The notes under the pieces: model-generated
Seen by the model: the letters and a program-made list of their open reading frames with translations, nothing else
Database searches by the model: none
Told to the model about the DNA's origin: nothing
Source: Macrostomum hystrix
Lineage: Eukaryota > Animalia > Platyhelminthes
DNA length: 64,000 nt
Reading direction: 5' to 3'
Assembly (NCBI GenBank): GCA_950097015.1
Contig: CATNEN010000020.1
Coordinates: 31,025 to 95,024 of the forward strand
Part shown: positions 49,077 through 64,000 of the stretch, piece by piece
Layout: the number at the start of each line of letters is the position of its first letter
Position numbering within the stretch: position 1 is the first letter of the stretch
Program-made: the position numbers and the translations under genes

Positions 49077-52000
49077 CTACTGCACGCGGCATCCGCTGGA
49101 GTTCTCCACGCGGCTCATGCGCCACTGACTGACCAAACGGGCGATTTTCATCCCAGCCGCCATCGACAGGTTGGTGGCCTCGTCACCGCCACCGGCGGCT
49201 CGGTTTCGATGCACGAGAGCCACGCTTCGGCTGGGCAGTGCGGCCAAGTGCTCGGCGAAGTCCGGCTCGGCCGGATCCGCGATCGCCAGCATGGTCAGCG
49301 AGCCGTCGACTCCGCCGCAGACAACGCCGCGACCGTCGACAGATCCGACGAGAGCTTTGACCTCAGCGTGCACCTTGTAGTCGGCTAGCAGAGCCCCGTC
49401 GGACATTCGAATCAGGCGGACCGTTTTTCGACCACTGTGAAAGTGCACAATGTACTTGTCGTTGTTGGTGAACACTGTCAGGCTGGGAAAAACGCCGTCG
49501 GCGGCCAAGCGGCGCAGGATCCACTTGGATTGCTGCGGCTTGCGCAGATCGAGCAGCTTCACGCCGCCAATCAGCGGGGAGAAGAGACCGTAAGCGCCAT
49601 CAGAGGTGACAGCGCCCTGCCACTCCGGAACCGAGCGCACCACCGCTTTCTTTTTAACGTCCCAGATCTGTCCGCAGTCCTCGGTGATGAGGCCGAGCCA
49701 GGCCGGTTTGCCGGGAAGCGGGACCAGCTGGCGCACCGGCTTGGCCTCGTTGCTGAGGCGCGGCTTCGTTTTGACAAGAAAAGCACCTGATACGGCGTCG
49801 TAAAACGAGACGATGAAGTCGTCGTCTTTTGCTGAGCATGGAACGAGAAGCTGATGGCTGTCTAAAGCAAAGACCGGCGCAACAAACTCGGCGCCGTGGT
49901 AGTACTCAAACTCGAAAAGCAGCTCACCGGCTGGCATCGAATAACAACTCAATGTTGTGCTCTTGGAAGTTCTCTTCTCGGCGCTGACAGCGACAAGCTT
50001 GCTGCCGTCCTTAGACAACTCCAGAGCCTCCACGGGGCCCCCGTCGCGGCTGTGCGTTGCCACGCACTCCGGCAGGCGCCAAAAGACAAGCCGGCGGCTG
50101 TCCCCTGATACCGCTGTTGAAGCATCGTGCGAGATGATCGTCTTGAAGATTATAGCATTGCCACTGGCTGAGAAGGTTTTCAACAGATGACCTCGCTGGA
50201 GGTCCCATAGGCCCAGGTAGGTTCGGGCAGCTGTCACGGCCGTTTTTCCATCCTTAGCCAGCGAAATCGAGTCGATTGGCTTCTCCATGTGGTGAATGTT
50301 GTACACGCGCTCCATTATATTGTTGAAGTTCCACACCTTGATGGTCTTGTCCATGGCAGAGGAGACGATGCGGTGCAGTGGCGCCGAACTTGTCAGGGCA
50401 ATGACCCGACCGAAGTGAGCGTCCAGCTTCTTCATCAAGGTGCCCGTCTTGCACGAGTAAGCCAACACAAGGTGACGCACTGCGGCTATCATAAACTCGT
50501 TGCCGCGGCTCAGCACGATCAGGTTCTGCATTGGGTTTCTGTTGGGAATGTTCTGACAGCCCTTGGGCAGCTGGGCGCGAGCGCATGGCCGATTCGCCGC
50601 AGCCAAGTGCCACAGTTTGAACTCGTTGGAGCAGGCAGCCACAAGAACATTCTCATCGTCGCTAAGCGTCAGACTGCAGAACTCGTCTGTATTGTCGACA
50701 TAGGTTTCTTCTCGAACGCCGAAGACAATGTCCTCAACGTTGCCTTCTGGGGTTTTCAGATAGCGATGAATAGCAAAGTCAAACGAAGAATCCTCCGAGC
50801 AACGCTCTGCCACAAAAAACTGGCGCCGGCCCATCGCCAGACCCGTGTGGTACTTTAGACTGCGAGAGACGTCTCGGCAAAAGTACAGCTTGAAATCTCT
50901 TGTCGTGGACGAGTCGCTGCCGTCGCCGTTGGAGCCTCGCGTATCGTCGGTGACAATGGACGTGCAGAAATAAAACTCGCCATCAGCCGCGCCACCGCCG
51001 CCGCCACCGCTGCCGCCGCCGCCGCCGCTGCCGCCGCCGCCGCTGCCGCCGCCGCCGCCGCTGCACTCTCCGCGGTAGCCAAAGTGAATGATCTCCTCTC
51101 GACAGCCGGCTTCTTCCGCTGCGAGCTGACTGGAGCGCGTCAGCTCCGCCGCATGGCTGAATTCAGACCAGCCGTGCGCAGTGAAGGCCAGGCAGGCCGT
51201 TGAAGTGACCAGAACCCCACGGATCTCTGCCTCCTTGGGCATGTCGTGAAACCGATGCTCGCCAGAGACCAGGTCGGTGAACACCAACTGGTTGTTGCTT
51301 GTGTAGCTGACTGCCCGCCTGTCTTCTGCATCGAAAGCCATGCCTCGAGTGATGCCTTGCAGACCGTGCATCGGAATGCTGCGAAATATCTCGCCAGTCT
51401 GCAGGTCCCAAATGATGAACTGGTTGGACACTGACACCAGGTACTTGCTGTCGCTGGTCACCTGCATTCCGTAGCAGGCGAACTGATGACCCTCAAGCGA
51501 GTACTCCAACGGGCCGCCTGGCGTGTACAGGTAGTGGTGACCGGGAACCAAAGCGCAGTGAGTCGGTCCCTGACGGTCGCATTCTTGAATGAGCCGTCGC
51601 ACCTTTTCAAAGTTGGCGTAGTACGGAAGCAGTCGCCCACTCACCTGCGGCCCCAGCATGTTCGGACTCTTGGTGATTATGCTAGCCGAGAGACGAAGGC
51701 ACTCGCTGAGAATCCGGGCGTCCCTGTCGTTCGTCTTGGCGATCATGCTGTCCAGATCTGACAGCAGCGCCTGAAGAGGAAACGCGCTCAGCTTGGCGTG
51801 CAGGAACTGGTAGTTGAACAGGCACTCGCTCGCCAGTTCTGCCATGCGGCCCGACTTCAGCAGCTGGAAGGGCAGCTCGCTCAGCTTGCGCAGGTTGTAT
51901 CGAGCTGTGCGCGCCGCACCGTCGTTTAGACGCAGCGGCTGCGGCGGCACCATTCGATCGCTCTCCGAGTTGACGTCCTTGAGGCCGAATCGCTGCTTCT

Positions 52001-55000
52001 GCAGCTCACTGTAGGCAAATGGCTTGGCCACCCCGGCCCACTTTCCCAGGTAATAATCGGCCAGGTTTGAGTGAATGCTCGACTTGAAGTTCAAGTTCTT
52101 GAAGTATCGCTTCTCGCACACCTGGAAGAACTGTCTATGGTACCAGTAGACAACGCTAACTCCGTCGGCCTCCTTCTCGACCAAGAAGCCAGGCAGTTCG
52201 CTACGGATGCGGGTCCACAGCAGCGGCGGGATGCGTCTGCTAGGTGGCAGGTGGTACTGATAGACATCGTTCAGGACCTTCTCATCCAGTGATAGATTGT
52301 CCTCGAGCTCGGACTCAGAGATGCCACTTTTTGAGGCTGTGATGTAGGAGAATGCGTGCGTCACCAGAATAAGACCATGCTGGTTCTCAATGCGCTGAAA
52401 CAGTTGCATGATGCTGTCGAAGATGTTGAAAGATAGAACATTCTTCTCGGGCGAATCGTAAGATCGCCACCGAGTGATCTCATCGAACACGATTTTGATA
52501 AACAGAGGCGAGGTGCACTTGGAGATGGCCTTATCCACCACCTGCCACTGCGACTCCGTGATGCTGCGATTTGCCGCTCGCAGCCGCACCCGAAGCACCT
52601 CCAGCGACAGGGGCTTGCCGAGGTCATCGAGCTTCAGAAAGTTATCAGCGGTGGACACCTTCAGCTTGAGAGTCTTCAATAGGCCATAAAAATTCGGCAG
52701 CGAAGACACGACGACCTTGACATTCGGCGGAAGCGCGTCCGGCAGCCACAATAGCAGATGAGCATTGTTCTCTGGTGATAACTCTTCTAGGGAGTCCAAG
52801 AACACCAGCAGTGGCCTCTGCGGTGTGGCGAAGGTCATGAGCTGCTTGAAGTGCTGGATGAGCCGCGGCAGCTCCTCAGGGATGTCCGCGGTGCGCTGGT
52901 CATAGAGGAAACTCAACTGGCGGCACAAACTGGTGAGCAGGACGCCCAAGGACGAACTCTGAGGAGACGTACCCAATAGTCGGAAAACAATGCAGGGCTC
53001 CAACCGCGGCTGCTGCTCATCCAGCCAGTTCCGCACCTGGAAGGTGATTAAGAACGCGAAGCCAAGTTCAAAATTTGTAGATTTTCTGAAAAGGCCAACT
53101 GGCTTCCCTAATTTCGACTCACCTCCCCGCATGACTTGGCCATCAGCGAAGTCTTTCCACAGCCGGGTTTGCCATAGAGTACAAAGATTCGCCGGTTTTC
53201 TACACTCCGACAATAGTCGCGCACCTTCAGCAAGTCGGCCTCGCGACCTTGAAATATCTGCAAAGCCCGCACGCCAACAGTTTGAGCGACGCAACACTAC
53301 TTATAGTAGTGATTAAAGTACTGACTAAGGTCGATAACATCGTTCTCACCTCGCATAACTTTGCGCACACAAGTAGGTGCTGCAAAATTTCCGACAGCGT
53401 GACGTCCTTGGAAACCAGGCGGTTTCTACGGGCGCCCCGGTCAATGAGGTGCACAAGGCGGGTGTAGAACGTGTCGCAAAATTCGTCTATGTACTCTGAA
53501 AGTTTAATCGGTCTTAAGTAAGGTAAGTAAAGTAAAGTTTAATCATTTACAGGACATGCTTTAGTCCTGTAAATGTAATTGTACTTGCAAAATAAAAGTA
53601 AATGTAATTGTAAAATATTTCAATATTTCAACATTAACCGACATGATGGCCAGAATAAACACAAGTGTATCCATCTATTCCTAGAAAACATTGCTTATTA
53701 TTCACATTGCTATACTGTGTACACAGGACATTGTGCGGGGGTCGACATGGCAAAAAGCTTTGGTGATTCAAATTGCGTTGTCAGTAATGCAGGAAAGATA
53801 TCGACAAGCGATGCCTGTCACAGGGTCGTGACTTGGACTTTTGTGTGACTTTTTTGACGATTTAAGAAATTTATGGACCAAGAATTGGGTAAAATCAGAT
53901 TTTTGAAAATTGCTGTATTCAAGTTTACAACTATAAAGAAACGATGCACATAGTAGGACAAAGTGTCTTCCCTGGCGCAGCGCGCTGATTGGTCCGTGAG
54001 GGAGGTGGGTTGGGAGGGGTTGGTGTGCAGGGGTGGAGAGGTTTGAGGGTCTGAGTTTAGGTTTGGTGGGGTAAGAAGGGATTTCTATTTAACAACAATT
54101 TCTTATACTTATGACTTTATATATTCTACGTTAATGTTAAAGATTACAAGGTCCTATTACCTGAAATCCTGCTTCAGTAAAATTAGGGGAGGGGGTTAAC
54201 CAGTCACAAATTGAGGTTTTTCGCTAATTTTTGGGCCCTTTAAACTAGGCATGGCCCAGCTTTTCCAACTATAGAAATTTGAAATCACTTCTGTGCGTAT
54301 CCAGGTGGATTCCAGACGGATCGACCCACGGCTGCGAGTAGCGAATGATCGAGGACGCCCGAAGGCGCTCTGGTATCTTCCTGTCGCGCAGGTCGTCCAT
54401 CAGCTGCTGACCCTCCCGGTCGACCTCCGAGCCAGACATGTCGATGAAGTTGCGAGCCACGCGCCAGTTCTCCAGGCTGATGCCATTCAGCTGGCGCAGG
54501 AAGGCCAGTGTGTGGCGGTGGTTGTCCGGCGCCGTCAGGATGCCGTGAATGTTCTCGCGCTCCGTCACTGCAGTCAGAGTGTAGGTGAGTTCAGGTGAGT
54601 GCAGATGAGTGCACGTTGAGTGCACGTTGTGCAGATGAGTGTTGGTAAGTGTAGTTGAGTGCAGGTGAGTGCAGTTGAGTTCAGGTGAGTGCAGGTGAGT
54701 GCTGGCTAAGTGGACGTTGTGCAGGTGAGTGCAGGTGAGTTTAAGTGAGTGCAGGTGAGTGCAGGTGAGTGCAGGTGAGTGCAGGTGAGTGCAGGTGAGT
54801 GCAGGTGAGTTCAGGTGAGTGCAGGTGAGTTTAGGTTAGTGCAGGGGAGTCCAGGAGAGTACAGGTGAGTTCAGGTGAGTTCAGGTGAGTGCAGAGGAGT
54901 TCAACAGAATGCAGGTAAGTGCAGGTGAGTTCAGGTGAGTGCAGGTAAGTTTAGGTTAGTGCAGGGGAGTCCAGGAGAGTACAGGTGAGTTCAGGTGAGT

Positions 55001-58000
55001 TCAGGTGAGTGCAGAGGAGTTCAACAGAATGCAGGTAAGTGCAGGTGAGTTCAGGTGAGTGCAGGTAAGTTTAGGTTAGTGCAGGGGAGTCCAGGAGAGT
55101 ACAGGTGAGTTCAGGTGAGTTTAAGTGAGCGCAGGTGAGTTTAAGTGAGTGCAGGTGAGTGCAGGTGAGTGCAGGTGAGTGTAGGTGAGTTCAGCTGAGT
55201 GCAGGGGAGTCCAGGAGAGTACAGGTGAGTTCAGGTGAGTGCAGGTGAGTTCAGGTGAGTGCAGGTGAGTTTAGGTTAGTGCAGGGGAGTCCAGGAGAGT
55301 ACAGGTGAGTTCAGGTGAGTTCAGGTGAGTGCAGGGGAGCTGAGGTGAGTGCAGGTGAGTGCAGGTGAGCTCAGGTGAGTGCAGGGGAGTTCAGCAGAAT
55401 GCAGGTGAGTGCAGGTGAGCTCAGGTGAGTGCAGGTGAGCTCAGGTGAGTGCAGGTGAGTGCAGGTGAGCGCAGCTGCTCCTAAGGTATGAGCTATTCTG
55501 CTGCTATGTGGCAGACTCCGACCTTGGCAAAGGCCTTACTCACCCGACATGAAATAGTTGTGCCTTTGATCTGCGTCAATTTTCTCCTGGTCAAAGAGTG
55601 CATCGGCAGCCCGGCGAAAGATGCCCTGCATTTTGGTCATTGTGGACCACCACTCATTCTGGTGTGCCTCCATCATCTTTTGCATTCCCTGTGAGCAGGT
55701 AACAGGTTTGAAAACAGGTATCGTAACAACTTTTTTTCGATAAATGTCGGACATTACAATAGAAAAATGATAGCATCTAGGTACGAGTTAAACAGGTATT
55801 ATTATATCATTACGAAGCACTCAGACATTTGTGGAGAAAAATATGGAGTCTACTCATCGTCTGAGATAGACTGGCACAGTTATACCAATGTCAGCAGAGC
55901 TGTTAACTCGCTTGCCCGTCACACCTAATGTCCTTCTAATGTCCTTCTAATGTCCTTCTAATGTCCTTCTAATGTCCTGAGTTTGACTTCGCAACCCTGG
56001 AGAAAGTGCTTGGGGCTTGTTGTGAATTCCATGCTCTTGAAACGATACAACCTCCAAGGCACAGTGAAAAATTCAGGGCAGATGTACATTCGTGTGTCAG
56101 TGTCGTGTAGATCGCCTCTTATTGGCTGCGGGTCGACTTGGACAAAATAATGTGCCCTCTTCCCTTCTGCAAATTATTATTCATGTATTGTGTGCTTGTT
56201 ATTCGGCTGTCACTTAGTAGAGTAGGTAGCGGGGTTGTAGCCTAGTGGTTAGAGCGTCGGACTGACGACTTGAAGGTCGGGGGTTCGATTCCCGACACTT
56301 CACTGGAACTATTTGTGTCTTTAAGCAATGCACTTAACTCTGCAACGCTGCAGTTTCATCCAGCTGTATCTGGGGTAATTGAGGGTGGCGTCCCCCCAGT
56401 CCATGGACTGAACAGCCGTACGCAGTCTTCAGCTGCGCCGTGCAATAGCTGCGGCTGCGCTGTCGGCTGCACATTTATCGACCCGGTTGTGGTAAGTGTA
56501 ATCAATTATTATAATTAACAATTAGACAGTAGATACGACATACGACATTAGACATTTTTGTAAAATGCTACCAAGAACAAAACTAATACTTTTTGAGCTA
56601 AAAACATGGACTCTAATTCAGTATAAAATGCGCTTTCATTCAATTTCGCACTCATAGACTGTCAGTAACTATGAGAGCATCTAGAAAATATAAAACTAAC
56701 TGCAGAAATTTGCTTTCGCAGATAACTACGCATGATGATTACGAACCTTTTCCTGAAATCAATGGATGATTTAAACAAATTATTCAGAAAAGTTTCAGCT
56801 AGTGTAGATGCAGAAGCAAAAGTGGAGGCTCCACTCACCTTGTTGTTGAAGTGAATCAAAATCGACGATATTGGCTGCAGCACCTGTACAGGCGGCACAA
56901 TGTTCGCGTCCAGCTTGTACCACCGCTCCAGGCAGGCTGCGTCCTCCGCCGAGCTCTGGCGTACAGCCTCCAGGATGAGATCGAATTCCTGGGCGTCAAT
57001 CAGCGTAGGAAACGGCCGGTAGCCGTACTTCTGACCGAGCAGAACCACGAAGTTCGGACCCACGCTAACGCGCTGGCAGGTTTTGATCTCCCGCAGGCAC
57101 AGCTCTGTGGTCATGTGGTCATCTGTGGCCTCATCGCGAACACCCCAGCGCATGTCAACGACCTGGCGATTCAGATTGGACGCAGTTTTCGGAACGCAAA
57201 CACGATAATAATAATTGCAGAAGGGCTGCGGGCAACGGCACATCATTTGGTGACACTAGAACCCCAGCCAGCGAGGAGGCAATTCTGCCCATTTCGCTGA
57301 CTCCTGAGCACACACGCACACAGATACTGTATGCAGGCACACACTCACACAGGTGTGTACATCTTTCCTGACTCTCTTATCGTCAGGCAGTGTACACTCT
57401 CACTGTGCCTTTGAGGTTGGCCCTCAAGGGCCTAAATTTCGCGACCAGCTTTAAGCCTTCTCTCCGAGGCTGCGCCCCAAGTAAATGTGGCCTCGCCGCG
57501 GAATCAAGCTCAGGGACCTTGGTGCGAGAGGCAAACGTGTTATAACGCTTTGCAACTCAACGCTCAACAAAATACCGAACAAATAGGAGAGAAAAATTGT
57601 CACCTGAAACTCGAGTCCGTGCTTCTCGCGACAGTACTCCTTGATCTTCGGATAGATTGTCTCCATCAGAGAGTTACGCTCAACTCCGGTGTCTAGAGTT
57701 CAGAGAAAGTTTAACAAAACAGCTCGAATTGATTTCGAATGAAGATTCTGTGATAAACATTCAAAATATTTGAGTACTACTCAAGTTGGTGTGAACCTGT
57801 GAAGGTGGAGCTGGTGAATATGCGCACGATCTTGCTGGGCATCGCTGGCAAATCCTCCAGAGACCCGCCGAACACCGAGTCGACCGTCGGGTGCCTGCCC
57901 CGGCTAAGCGGACCCGTCAGCAGCTCCAGCTCCGGCAGGTCGTCATCTTCGTCTTCGGCGGCCAAAAACTCCTCAGCGGCCTCTAAATCTTCTTCCTCGC

Positions 58001-58591
58001 CGAGGTCTTCACCATCGTCTATCGGCATCTCGACGTCACCGTCGTCTGAGTCAAGAGTTGCCGCACCAGTTGCTGCGATAGGCGTTGATGTCTCAGCTGT
58101 TTTGTCACCGGCGTCGTCAGCAGCAGTCTCGTCGAAGGCTGCGGTTTCGGCCCCTTCGAAAGGCTCAGCTTGTTCCTGACTCTGCGGATCTTGCTGATCC
58201 TGTTGAAGCCAGTTTTGCGGAAGCTGCTGCAGCTGCTGAGGCAGCTGATGATGCTGCGACTGCTGATGATGCTGCGACTGCTGAAGCAACTGTTTGAGTA
58301 GCTGTAGCTGCTGCTGTTGCTGCTGCTGCTGCTGAGGTTGCTGATTTTGCTGCGACTGCTGAAGCAATTCCTGTATTAGCTGCCGCTGCTCAGGTTGCTG
58401 TAGCTCCTGTGAAATGCTTGACTGCTGAAGCAGCTGTTGTAGAATTTGTTGCTGCTGTTCCTGTTCTGGTATCGGATCAAGTGGCTGGTGTAGCTCGGTA
58501 TGGAGTTGTTGCTGATTCCTAAGCGTCTGTTGCACCCGTTGCGGTTGCTGCAGACTTTGCTGCTTTTGAACTGGCGGCTGCAACCCTAAAA

Positions 58592-58631
<40 letters not shown>

Positions 58632-58954
58632 ATCTAAGTTCAAGGGCTGATTTTGTTGAACAAGCTGCTGCAAGAGCTGCTGCTGCGATGAGTTGTGCTC
58701 AAGTTGCTGTGGTCGCAATTTGAGAAGCTGCAGTAGCTTTTGCTGCTGTGCACTTTGCGGTGCCAGCTGAAGCAGCTCTTGAAACGATTGAGGCTGTGAC
58801 AGCATTTGCTCTTCGACAGTAGGATTGCCTGTCGCAGCATCTCGCGGTGGGTCATTTCTGCGATCTCCCAGATGAGTCTCTATACTTTGCTGCTGCTGCT
58901 GCGTTGGAGGCAGCACAGGAAATTGACCGCGTCTCAAGTTCATTTCAGTCTGAC

Positions 58955-59000
<46 letters not shown>

Positions 59001-62000
59001 AAGCTGTTGCAGACGCGGAGGCATTCTCATTGGCAGCTTGACCTCCGGCAGTGATCCAAAGCTGAACTGCTGCTGATGATTCTGGAGCTGCCCCTGTTGA
59101 TGCTCGAGCCTTTGCTGCTGCTGCTGCTGCTGCAGGTTTTGCAGGTACTGCGGCTGCCTTGGCGGCTGTTTGGACTCTGAAAGTGCACCAAATTCGACGC
59201 GTTTCAGCGTCTGCTCGCCGGGTGGCTCAGCGATGGACTCCAACTGGTGGCCAGCGAACTCTTGCGGCTTGCGGCCTCGCCTGCACCGACCGGCCTCGCT
59301 GCGCCTCGATGCATTGCGCCCCGGGCCGGGCCCCGGATACAGACGGCCCAGCGAGAACTCCTCAGCGGCCTGGCTGGGCGTCATGCCGCTCAGCGTCTTG
59401 GAAAAGCTCGGCTGCGCCGAGGGAATCGCGCCGGACTGAGCGGCTGGCAGCTCGCCGGTGTCGCCAAGGTGAGCCAGCCGGATGTTGACCACCTGCGGCC
59501 GCTCCGGCCGATTGTCACGCGATCGATGCCTCGATCGTTTCGCCCTGAGATCCGCAGCGACGCCGCCGTCGGCTGCTTCTAAGCTCGTCGTCGGCAAACT
59601 GCCCGGCTTCAACGACTGCGACAGCTCCTTGGACAGTCGAAACTCGAGCTCCTGACCACCGGATAGCAGGATCATCACCTCGGGAGGCTGCGACCCCTGA
59701 TTGCCAGATTCGTCGGCGTGCGAGCCGACTGGCCCTGACACGGCCTGCAGACTGCTCTTCTTCAGGGTCACTGCCGACAGATCAAAGAGAATCAGCATGA
59801 GATTCATGAGATGTGAGACTGTTGTGATCTGAGTACAACCAGGTCTGATTCATGAGTTATGAAATTTAGGATGATGCCGACACCTGAGGCCATCTTAAAG
59901 TACTTGCTAATCAGATTCCATTATCTCGCCGTCTCACCTGGAGGCGGCGTACCGCTGATTGACACCTTCCAGAGGCTCTTGGTCTGCGGCCGGGGTCGCG
60001 GCCCCAGCTCCATTAGGCGTCTGGAGAAATAATTGTTGACAACTTTTTGTTTTCATGATTTTGTTTTTAGAATAAACTCACGAATGGAATTTCATTCTAG
60101 GAGTAAAGCTATAGTTTAGATAGAGCTTGTGATGTACTTTTAAATGAGCGTCTAGAGATTGACGTTAATTTGGCGATTGAAATGTACTTTAAAGGCGACG
60201 ACACATAAGTACTTTGCTGTGACATGTGACATCTACACGCGACCGATGAATTTTTTAGGAAAACAAAAAAAACTTTTCGAAATCCTTGAGATTGAAAAAT
60301 TCATTAGATTGATAAATCCATGAGACTGATAAATCAATGAGTCTGAGATTAATAAATCAATGAGATTGATAAATCAATGAGTGTGAGATTGATCAATCCA
60401 TGAGACTGATTAATCCATGAGTCTGATAAATCAATGAGATTGATAAATACAAGAGACTGATAAATCAATGAGACTGATAAATCAATGAGTTTGATAAATA
60501 CAAGAGATTGATACATACAAGAGATTGATAAATCAATGAGACTGATAAATCCAAGAGATTGATAAATCCACGAGATAGATAAATCAATGAGATTGATGAA
60601 TCCATGAGACTGTTAAATCCATGAGACTGATGAATCCATGAGTCTGATAAATCAATGAGATTGATAAATACAAGAGACTGATAAATCAATGAGACTGATA
60701 AATCAATGAGACTGATAAATCAATGAGATTGATAAATACAAGAGACTGATAAATCAATGGGTTTGATAAATACAAGAGATTGATAAATTCATGAGTCTGA
60801 TAAACACAAGGGATTGATAGATCCATAAAATTTATAAATCAATGAGATTGATAAATCCATGGGACTGATAAATCAATGAGATTGATAAATACAAAGAGAT
60901 TGATGAATCCATGAGACTGATAAATTCATGAGACTGATGAATCCATGAGACTGATAAATCCATGAGACTGTTAAATCCATGAGACTGTTAAATCCATGAG
61001 ATTTCGGAAATCTATGACATTGGGGAAACGCGGGAGCAGTTGAATATTGCGGCAATCTCAGTAATTAATATGCATGCGAGGCGAATAAAGCAAATAGATC
61101 ATATCAGAAGAGTAACTAATTTAGCCAATAGTTGTAAATCAGAACAGAGGAAGCCGTATTAGTATAAGTACATTTTATGACAACTAACAAAGCACAGTAG
61201 CAACAATTTTTAGTTTATTAACTGTAGAAAGTTCACGGAGGTATTTCAAGCACCCACTGTCCGATTCAACAACCTCCAGAGTCACAAAACATCGGCATCG
61301 CCGAGATATTCAACGATTCTCGTCTGGCAAGAACCACAAATATGGGGCATATTTCAATATGTCATTGTTAGTAATTTTGTATTTAAATAGTTAATTGTTG
61401 TATTTTTGGGCAGTGGGTATTTGAAATACCCCCCTGGTGTTTTACTGTCAAGTGATAGCTAATTCGAACTACGAGATAAGCGAATATTGGGTCAATGGAT
61501 TCTACTTATTTGCAGTGCGAAGTACCTGTTTAGTAACTGGCTGAAATGTGTGAGTATTTTGTGGCCAGCAAGTTAGAAACAATTGTTTAGTAAAGTTCAG
61601 AAAATCGTTTGCTCAAAAAATGCTGAAAACCCACTTACCTTGAAATGCTGCGTCCCTTATACACTGAAAAATGGAAGAGGTAAACACTTTAATGTGCGAA
61701 TTTTCTCATGCAACTAAGACAGTAGTATTGTATCATAGAACACTCTTGTCTAACACTGAACACTCTTGTCTAACACTGAACACTCTTGTCTAACACTGAA
61801 CACTCTTGTCTAATACTGAACACTCTTGTCTAACACTGAAGACTCTTGTCTAACAATGAACACTCTTGTCTAACACTGAACACTCTTGTCTAACACTGAA
61901 CACTCTTGTCTAACACTGAACACTCTTGTCTAATACTGAACAATCTTGTCTAACACTGAAGACTCTTGTCTAACAATGAACACTCTTGTCTAACACTGAA

Positions 62001-63618
62001 CATTCTTGTCTAACACTGAACACTCTTGTCTAACACTGAACACTCTTGTCTAACACTGAAAATACTTGTCTAACACTGAACACTCTTGTCTAATACTGAA
62101 CAATCTTGTCTAACACTGAAGACTCTTGTCTAACACTGAACACTCTTGTCTAACACTGAACACTCTTGTCTAACACTGAACACTCTTGTCTAACAATGAA
62201 CACTCTTGTCTAACACTGAACACTCTTGTCTAACACCGAACACTCTTGTCTAACACTGAACACTCTTGTCTAACACTGAACAATCTTGTCTAACACTGAA
62301 CACTCTTGTCTAACACTGAACACTCTTGTCTAACACTGAACACTCTTGTCTAACACTGAACACTCTTGTCTAACACTGAACACTCTTGTCTAACACTGAA
62401 CACTCTCGTCTAACACTGAACACTCTTGTCTAACAATGAACACTCTTGTCTAACACTGAACACTCTTGTCTAACACTGAACACTCTTGTCTAACACTGAA
62501 CACTCTTGTCTAACACTGAACACTCTTGTCTAACAATGAACACTCTTGTCTAACAATGATCACTCTTGTCTAACACTGAACACTCTTGTCTAACACTGAA
62601 CACTCTTGTCTAACACTGAACAGTCTTGTCTAACACTGAACACTCTTGTCTAACAATGAACACTCTTGTCTAACACTGAACACTCTTGTCTAACACCGAA
62701 CACTCTTGTCTAACACTGAACACTCTTGTCTAACAATGAACACTCTTGTCTAACAATGAACACTCTTGTCTAACACTGAACACTCTTGTCTAACACTGAA
62801 CACTCTCGTCTAACACTGAACACTCTCGTCTAACACTGAACACTCTTGTCTAACAATGAACACTCTTGTCTAACACTGAACACTCTTGTCTAACACTGAA
62901 AATACTTGTCTGATAGTGAACACTCTTGTCTAACACTGAACACTCTTGTCTAACACTGAACACTCTTGTCTTCTTGTCTTCTAGAACCGTTGTCAAACTG
63001 TTTTTGAAATCCGCAGCACTTTACAATAGGATCCACTCTCAATGGTTGTGGCCAATTTTTGCTTGCCATTATTTTCTCAACTGCAGCCCTAACATTTGCA
63101 TTTCCCACAATGCCACCAGAGCAGAGGAACATTGCAGTGACAGCTGAGGGGTGGAGACCGGGGAACAAGAATGGCGAGGAACTTGGGAACAAATGTTTGA
63201 AGGGGCGCACTGATCTCAGCTCTGAGTATAGTTCTCGAAATGCAATTTAATATCTGCTTCAGAACAGAACAATTTTTATGTCAGAAAAAAGTGCTAACAC
63301 TATCCAGAATAATCATTTGACGCTTGAAACTTGCTAACTGTCTGTCTTGTTTTCACGCGACCCAAAATTTATGGAATTTATGTGTAATATTATCTGTTAG
63401 ACAAGGTTGTTCATGTGTTAGAAAAAGTTGTTAATGTGTTAAAAAAGGCTGTTCATGCGTTAGACAAAGTTGGTCATGCGTTAGACAAAGTTGGTCATGC
63501 GTTAGACAAAGTTGCTCATGTGTTAGACAAGCAGATTTGTTTATTAAGCATTTGACACCTGTCACTTACCGTCAGGGTGCTTAACATAAATTTGCACAAC
63601 TAAGTCACCGCGCCACAT
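49077..63618 (-). CDS. NACHT- and WD40-repeat protein (NWD1/NWD2-like STAND ATPase) with putative N-terminal ubiquitin-like domain and polyQ linker, ~2454 aa
   Basis: Phase-consistent exons (minus): 63570-63618, 62988-63143, 61639-61663, 59938-60020, 57797-59770, 57604-57692, 56839-57162, 55544-55688, 54289-54567, 53350-53495, 53123-53257, 49077-53036 = 7365 nt. Motifs VRIFTSSTFTD and VDMRWGVRDE (DUF4062-like N-domain), Walker A GKPGCGKT, Walker B LLVFLDSLEE, WD repeats (LEGH, SSAMDKTIKVWN). The first three exons are less certain (~0.7). Confidence 0.88.
54585..55472. repeat. 10-bp minisatellite (CAGGTGAGT[G/T]) with ~120-bp higher-order units, filling an NWD intron
   Basis: Direct reading; higher-order unit repeated at ~54811, 54931 and 55051. 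Confidence 0.95.
55995..56100 (+). mobile_element. Degenerate SINE family A fragment, preceded by an 11-bp repeat (CTAATGTCCTT x~4-5, 55927-55978)
   Basis: GCTTGGGGCTTGTTGTG...AACCTCCAAGGCACAGTGA...CAGGGCAGATGTACA matches family A. Confidence 0.55.
56230..56515 (+). mobile_element. tRNA-derived SINE, family B (full length)
   Basis: GGGGTTGTAGCCTAGTGGTTAGAGCG...GGTTCGATTCCC head, CORE-like centre, 3' GTGCAATAGCTGCGGCTGCGCTGTCGGCTGCAC, TTATTAT tail. Confidence 0.85.
57205..57548 (-). mobile_element. tRNA-derived SINE, family A (copy 2), occupying most of an NWD intron
   Basis: Aligns by eye with 600-918 and 63804-64000; ends in a (TAT)n tail ~40 nt before the acceptor at 57163. Confidence 0.8.
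60305..61003. repeat. Degenerate ~17-bp minisatellite (AATC[A/C]ATGAGA[C/T]TGATA) in an NWD intron
   Basis: Direct reading; ~40 copies of variable length. Confidence 0.9.
61234..61438. mobile_element. Short MITE of the palindromic-TIR family
   Basis: CACGGAGGTATTTCAAGCACCCAC vs reverse complement of right end ACCAGGGGGTATTTCAAATACCCAC. Confidence 0.65.
61739..62970. repeat. 20-bp minisatellite (AACACTCTTGTCTAACACTG), ~61 copies, in NWD intron 2
   Basis: Direct reading; ends ~17 nt from the exon-2 donor. Confidence 0.97.
63396..63531. repeat. ~6 copies of a 21-bp unit (TGTTAGACAAAGTTGTTCATG), an inverted relative of the 20-bp array, in NWD intron 1
   Basis: Reverse complement of the first unit, CATGAACAACCTTGTCTAACA, vs array unit (C/A)TGAACACTCTTGTCTAACA. 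Confidence 0.85.
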
Positions 63619-63803
63619 TTCACACTGCAGCTAAAATTTATTCCACCATAAATAATTTATAGCGTAGTTAGTCAACGCAATATAATACTCAATTTTTGCC
63701 TTTTAGCTCGTACTTTCAAGAATAGAACAGTCTATGAATGGTCAAACCTGTTACACGGAAGGGTTCCGTTAATTTTAGAACAGATTGTAACCTGTTAGAC
63801 GTA

Positions 63804-64000
63804 GGGGGTCGGTGGCAGAGCGGTTAACGCGTTTGCCTCTCGCACCAAGGTCCCTGAGCTCGATTCCGCGGCGAGGCCACATTCATTTGGGGCGCAGCCG
63901 CGGAGAGAAGGCTTGGGGGCTTGTCGTTCAATTTACGCCCTTGAGGGCCAACCTCCAAGGCACAGTGAGAGTGTACACTGCCTGACGATGAGAAAGTCAG
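63804..64000 (+). mobile_element. tRNA-derived SINE, family A (copy 3, truncated by the window end)
   Basis: GGGGGTCGGTGGCAGAGCGG (A box) ... GAGCTCGATTCC (B-box-like), with body matching copies 1 and 2; ~185 bp upstream of the predicted NWD ATG, divergently oriented. Confidence 0.85.

Follow-up and report, generated by a model that had tools for sequence, protein, structure and literature searches.

Reverse-complementary sequences in the two introns around an exon are known to drive back-splicing in several systems, including the Alu pairs of primates, the inverted repeats of mouse Sry and the repeats of Drosophila laccase2, and a complementarity of about 30–40 nt has been reported to be enough for circularisation. 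In Solnick's classic experiments, an exon placed within a pre-mRNA hairpin loop was reportedly skipped, and the effects of hairpins on splicing in vivo depend on co-transcriptional kinetics. Two further kinds of element are built from tandem repeats: the Foldback (FB) transposons, in which inverted arms of tandem subrepeats surround a variable middle, and the Jeffreys core minisatellites of human, which form a core-sharing family. In maize, LINE1-like pairs have been described as lying behind circular RNAs (10.1101/100578). Here, we describe a locus of the flatworm Macrostomum hystrix in which two minisatellite arrays in inverted orientation bracket a 156-nt candidate exon near the 5' end of an NWD2-like gene. 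The gene lies on the minus strand of a 64,000-nt stretch (assembly GCA_950097015.1, contig CATNEN010000020.1, positions 31,025 to 95,024), hereafter referred to as the window, and coordinates without a contig name are positions in it. The arrays are probably ordinary members of a minisatellite family, and the RNA stem predicted between them a by-product of their local birth in a repeat-saturated genome rather than a selected device.

The long arm (61738–62971, minus strand) is a 20-mer minisatellite located between the candidate cassette exon (62988–63143) and a 25-nt microexon. Tandem Repeats Finder (TRF) yielded 61.7 copies of the unit GAACACTCTTGTCTAACACT, with 94% matches and a score of 2216, and the RNA-sense reading of these units is AGUGUUAGACAAGAGUGUUC. 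This array begins 16 nt past the donor of the candidate exon. The short arm (63395–63530, minus strand) is a 21-mer minisatellite (TRF: 6.5 copies of TGTTAGACAAAGTTGTTCATG, 86% matches) that is reverse-complementary to the long arm; it starts 39 nt past the donor of a candidate first coding exon (63570–63618) and stops 251 nt short of the acceptor of the 156-nt segment. These values agree with an earlier interpretation made from the letters of the window (hereafter, the sequence-only reading), which had described about 61 copies of a 20-mer starting some 17 nt from the donor, and about six reverse-complement copies of a related 21-mer in the upstream intron.

The two arms are very unequal in size (1,234 and 136 nt) and inverted relative to each other, with a separation of 423 bp, and the unit of one is related to the reverse complement of the other. 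Taken singly, units of the long and short arms are 89–95% complementary, the inverted pairs I1–I25 between the arms are 79–95% complementary, and blastn aligned the arms with 77% identity and 6 gaps over 137 nt. At its inner edge, the short arm has a unit with 95% complementarity to variant units found in the long arm. The loop between the arms (62972–63394, minus strand; 423 nt) encloses the candidate exon and has no second copy in the genome (own-genome searches, here and below, covered 220,453,370 bases in 42 contigs), and the matches of 63144–63569 elsewhere in the genome were restricted to its array part. An 11-nt core, TGTTAGACAAG, was found 62 times in the 64-kb window with at most one mismatch, versus 1.6 occurrences expected; all 62 fell inside the two arrays, and the long arm had 60 matches on the minus strand. 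This core search identified no other complementary partner for the arms elsewhere in the window.

Thermodynamic modelling indicates that the two arrays should pair strongly as RNA. The duplex predicted by RNAduplex spans the short arm in full (136 nt), with an energy of −139.6 kcal/mol, versus −70.5 ± 5.5 kcal/mol for dinucleotide shuffles (z about −12.6), and the net gain from co-folding of the arms is about −109 kcal/mol. In the minimum-energy fold of a 2,041-nt pre-mRNA, 115 of the 136 short-arm nucleotides are paired, all of them with the long arm, and the predicted duplex across the segment is about 115–130 bp; the sequence-only reading had named such a fold as a check, and the stem that it looked for is predicted. 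By itself, the long array is less structured than its shuffles (−71.4 vs −89.7 ± 4.0 kcal/mol for 400 nt), and would therefore be available for pairing. In folds of the growing transcript, cross-pairing appeared in the first fold that reached the long array (about 20 nt of array) and in every later one, and it was essentially complete at 170–190 nt past the donor. Since the length of the duplex is limited by the 136-nt short arm, the 61-copy array is expected to shift the register of pairing and the size of the loop, with hardly any effect on stability. The earlier suggestion that array length acts as a heritable dial is thereby weakened, the long array adding registers but little stability to a stem capped by its partner.

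The locus resembles the Alu, Sry, laccase2 and maize pairs in having complementary sequences in both introns around a (candidate) exon, and its predicted stem is far longer than about 30–40 nt. A stable stem across the exon, as looked for in intron pairs that promote circularisation or skipping, was found here (77% identity over 137 nt, −139.6 kcal/mol, 115 of 136 nt paired). However, the arms are minisatellite arrays and not dispersed transposon copies, and their unequal sizes give about 55 alternative registers, in a pairing that is here a folding prediction. As in the Solnick hairpins, the stem would draw the upstream donor close to the downstream acceptor and sequester the enclosed segment, but those hairpins were engineered, whereas this stem is thermodynamically predicted. 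A search of the literature for flatworm circular RNAs, or for circular RNA pairs built from minisatellites, yielded nothing specific.

The arrays have many relatives in the genome. Tandem repeats account for about 27% of the window and for 41–76% of four sampled 10-kb stretches of contig C1, and the core GTTAGACA, at a spacing of 18–22 nt, formed 22,672 tandem triplets genome-wide, versus about 770 for the reversed control. The unit consensus was read at ten other loci, each of which had its own unit, so the same core is present at unlinked loci with differing units, as in a dispersed core-sharing family. In this respect, the M. hystrix arrays are like the Jeffreys minisatellites, with many loci, differing units and a short common core. 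They differ from them in their far higher density, in that introns are filled with them, and in that a same-core array often lies nearby. The core of the superfamily, (C)TGTTAGACA, is a near-palindrome (TGT...ACA), and the locus-specific units measure 19–22 nt (for example, at C1:182058-186588, C1:807969-810094, C1:1072359-1072717 and C1:1195775-1196073). A closer subfamily is found on many contigs, with arrays that are 70–87% identical to the long arm and 70–79% identical to the short arm. The two local arms, which are 77% alike, thus resemble each other no more than they do arrays on other contigs.

A second same-core array is often found 1–2 kb from the first. Direct pairs are present at C1:182–186 kb and C1:808–810 kb, and inverted pairs at C1:14.98 Mb and, twice, near C1:13.58 Mb. 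The three inverted pairs (C1:14981501-14984645, positions 2002–5146 of stretch L035; C1:13573500-13575856, positions 1–2357 of L036; and C1:13583899-13585999, positions 3900–6000 of L037) have unique loops of 1.0–1.25 kb, and their cores face each other, unlike those of the pair in the window. No sequence is shared by the loops and flanks of these three pairs, either among themselves or with the NWD2-like locus, and the majority of the sampled family arrays are single or direct. Neighbouring arrays of the same family, in either orientation, therefore seem to be a normal product of repeat birth, judging from a sample of sequences that is small and was chosen in part because inverted matches had already been seen.

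According to the explanation that we favour, minisatellites with the GTTAGACA core would have inflated the 5' intron region of the NWD2-like gene, where one local seed would, most likely, have been copied in inverted orientation. Each copy would then have been expanded and homogenised separately, giving the 20-mer array of 62 copies and the 21-mer array of 6.5 copies, with 77% identity between them. The inverted arms would form an imperfect stem of about 115–130 bp in the pre-mRNA, with 423 nt looped out. Should the 156-nt segment be a genuine exon, this stem would be expected to favour in-frame skipping to a certain degree, and perhaps also back-splicing; otherwise, the stem would lie within a single 1.9-kb intron. 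The edge unit of the short arm, with its 95% complementarity to long-arm variants, fits a shared local seed, and with no more than tens of close relatives across 220 Mb, the presence of two arrays at a distance of 423 bp is unlikely to result from random placement. We infer a local inverted-copy origin and a lack of selection. Two points tell against this explanation: the non-random 423-bp spacing could reflect selection and not local birth alone, and the enclosed segment is frame-symmetric, with a very good acceptor. With regard to the splicing switch or circular RNA that the sequence-only reading had attributed to array pairing, the complementarity and the predicted stem are retained, but an evolved switch is not supported, given that the arms are 77% alike and that pairs from the same family occur in either orientation elsewhere.

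The effect that the stem might have depends on the nature of the enclosed segment. The candidate cassette exon (62988–63143, minus strand; 156 nt) is open in precisely the frame required for phase 1-1, with 51 full codons (VTAMFLCSGG...QKQFDN). Its acceptor has 22 pyrimidines in 26 positions, followed by AG, within an AT-rich intron, but its donor (G|GTTCTA) is very weak and unlike the GTRAG donors of the neighbouring introns; in length, phase and weakness of the donor, the segment is as the sequence-only reading had described it. The candidate first coding exon has a phase-1 end, as does the 156-nt segment, so inclusion and skipping would both keep the frame. The segment has a GC content of 43%, with 39% at third codon positions (GC3), versus 58–65% and 65–77%, respectively, for the confirmed exons of the gene, and is close in GC content to the surrounding introns (32–39%). 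The exon peptide, searched alone, matched no Pfam family at E values up to 10, its best match among PDB sequences had an E value of 0.73 and involved unrelated proteins, and no homologue was found among 1.84 billion representative proteins at E values up to 0.001. It matched only itself in its own genome, and no relative of the segment was found within 8.7 kb upstream of the microexon in the paralogue of the gene on contig C31. In the absence of a match in any of these libraries, the "UBL core" (ubiquitin-like core) that had been assigned to this exon is unsupported by the exon alone. A circle formed from 62988–63143 would have no stop codon and, with phase 1-1, an endless reading frame that includes two in-frame AUGs. 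We consider the odds that the 156-nt segment serves as an exon to be about even or a little lower.

One alternative to a role in splicing is that the 156-nt segment is not an exon at all, the candidate first exon being joined directly to the microexon, with both arrays in one 1,906-nt intron (61664–63569), where they would form a harmless hairpin. This arrangement has a chance only slightly short of even. It is consistent with the GTTCTA donor, so unlike those of the neighbouring introns, with a composition nearer to that of the introns than to that of the confirmed exons, and with the lack of any relative in the paralogue, the own genome, Pfam, PDB sequences and the 1.84 billion representatives; the candidate first exon and the microexon are in frame, both in phase 1, and, by our own estimate, an open frame of such length is not rare by chance in 1.9 kb. 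Against it stand an unusually good acceptor in an AT-rich intron, an open frame that fits the required phase at both ends, and the start of the long array 16 nt past the putative donor. In a further explanation, array pairing would loop out a genuine cassette exon, giving isoforms with and without 52 residues, a 156-nt circular RNA, or both, with copy number tuning the outcome. The predicted stem is strong (−139.6 kcal/mol, z about −12.6); it was present in every growing-transcript fold that contained long-array sequence, from about 20 nt onwards, and had no competing complementary partner in the window; frame symmetry and a weak donor are typical of alternative exons, and the circle would hold an unbroken reading frame with its two AUGs. 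Nevertheless, we consider such a working device unlikely. The exon is a candidate only, with a GC3 of 39% and no homologue found, and the arrangement bears no sign of selection, with arms that are 77% alike and family pairs in both orientations at other loci. Furthermore, the short arm caps the length of the stem, making the long array a poor dial, and a single-exon circle of 156 nt would be a short one. A genome-wide extension of this idea, in which inverted same-core pairs around short unique segments, including exons, would be a fast-evolving source of skipping and circular RNAs with an Alu-like role, the NWD2-like locus and its 156-nt circle with an endless frame being one case, appears slightly more improbable still.

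A different kind of explanation would treat the 1.8-kb block as one Foldback-type transposon with tandem-repeat arms, from the loop of which a new exon had been recruited, and the sequence-only reading had noted this resemblance. The inverted arms of tandem subrepeats (61.7 and 6.5 copies) are indeed like those of FB transposons, and the loop segment is lineage-specific and has an intron-like composition. However, no multi-copy element was found, the loop and flanks having no second genomic copy, and there are no shared termini; the 25-nt outer flanks have no k-mer of at least 5 nt in common, leaving no target-site duplication. The loops and flanks of the three other inverted pairs are unrelated to this locus and to each other, most of the sampled family arrays are single or direct, and the arms, at 77% identity, have diverged in unit length. 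With a single-copy loop and flanks, no target-site duplication, unshared loops and diverged arms, a Foldback element was rejected, and we regard this origin as very improbable.

If the stem does affect splicing, rapidly mutating tandem repeats, and not transposons, would in this case supply the intron pairing that loops out or circularises an exon, and an N-terminal segment of an NWD2-like NACHT/WD-repeat protein would be under a control that varies with copy number. For the present, the locus is chiefly an illustration of how long intronic RNA duplexes may arise as a side effect of a minisatellite-saturated genome. It would be of interest to determine, genome-wide, whether exons bracketed by inverted arrays undergo more skipping or back-splicing than those bracketed by direct or unrelated arrays, and RNA-seq data sets for M. 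hystrix have been described (PMC10468722).

The host gene was identified as NWD2-like through its large downstream exon (49080–53297), which is 83% identical to the M. lignano NACHT/WD protein P0001 and about 40% identical to the NWD2 of many animals. Protein P0001 begins with MELGPRPRPQTK, which is encoded in the window at 59938–60020 (minus strand). This coding exon, (R)RLMELGPRPRPQTKSLWKVSISGTPPP, matches the N-terminus of P0001, and the M. lignano gene model starts at the ATG inside this exon. A paralogue of the gene on contig C31, with a DUF4062 exon that is 87% identical, has kept this MELGP exon with 80% DNA identity, along with the acceptor position and the two codons that precede the ATG. 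The 25-nt coding microexon, (V)YKGRSIS (61639–61663, minus strand), would take phase 1 from either the candidate first exon or the candidate cassette exon. In the paralogue, it is located about 2.5 kb upstream of the MELGP exon, with splice sites identical to those of 61639–61663 (in the paralogue stretch L030, the microexon is at 8243–8267 and the following exon at 5663–5745). Six of the seven differences between the two microexons are at third codon positions, and the peptide is VYKGRS(I/V)S. Since the microexon and the pre-ATG codons are kept between the paralogues, translation starts farther upstream than the microexon and requires a phase-1 donor there. We conclude from this conservation of sequence that the reading frame of these NWD2-like genes extends farther upstream than the MELGP at which the M. 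lignano model P0001 starts.

The candidate first coding exon, MWRGDLVVQIYVKHPD (63570–63618, minus strand), consists of an ATG, 16 codons and 1 nt, with the donor ACG|GTAAGT in phase 1, and is the sole ATG-containing open frame with a strong phase-1 donor upstream of the microexon within the window. No equivalent of this exon or of the 156-nt segment was found within 8.7 kb upstream of the microexon of the C31 paralogue, and an unrelated ELAV-like open frame lies farther upstream than that. For the first 269 residues of the open frame of the Q-rich exon (59001–59807), no transcript-derived protein was found. The paralogous NWD2-like locus is present twice, with near-identical hit patterns, at C31:3481000-3490999 and C13:65800-75799, and may correspond to a retained haplotig or to a very recent duplication. 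Two other introns of the host gene contain minisatellites with unrelated units: a 20-mer with 45 copies (54577–55474), which almost fills an intron of about 960 nt, and a 17-mer with 42 copies (60280–61003; 724 nt), which starts about 635 nt past the donor.

An Rfam scan of positions 56000–64000 gave sub-threshold chance matches only, plus a tRNA-like match under the gathering score at 56231–56300. Just upstream of the candidate first exon, a young and very abundant tRNA-like short interspersed nuclear element (SINE) occupies positions 63804–64000, at the contig end, with more than 1,000 first-look candidate copies in the genome, the top 40 of which are 96–98% identical. A second copy, in inverted orientation, is located in an intron 6.3 kb downstream (57368–57542), and is 90–94% complementary to 63804–64000. 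If the upstream copy were transcribed, the two could form a second RNA stem across the first exons.

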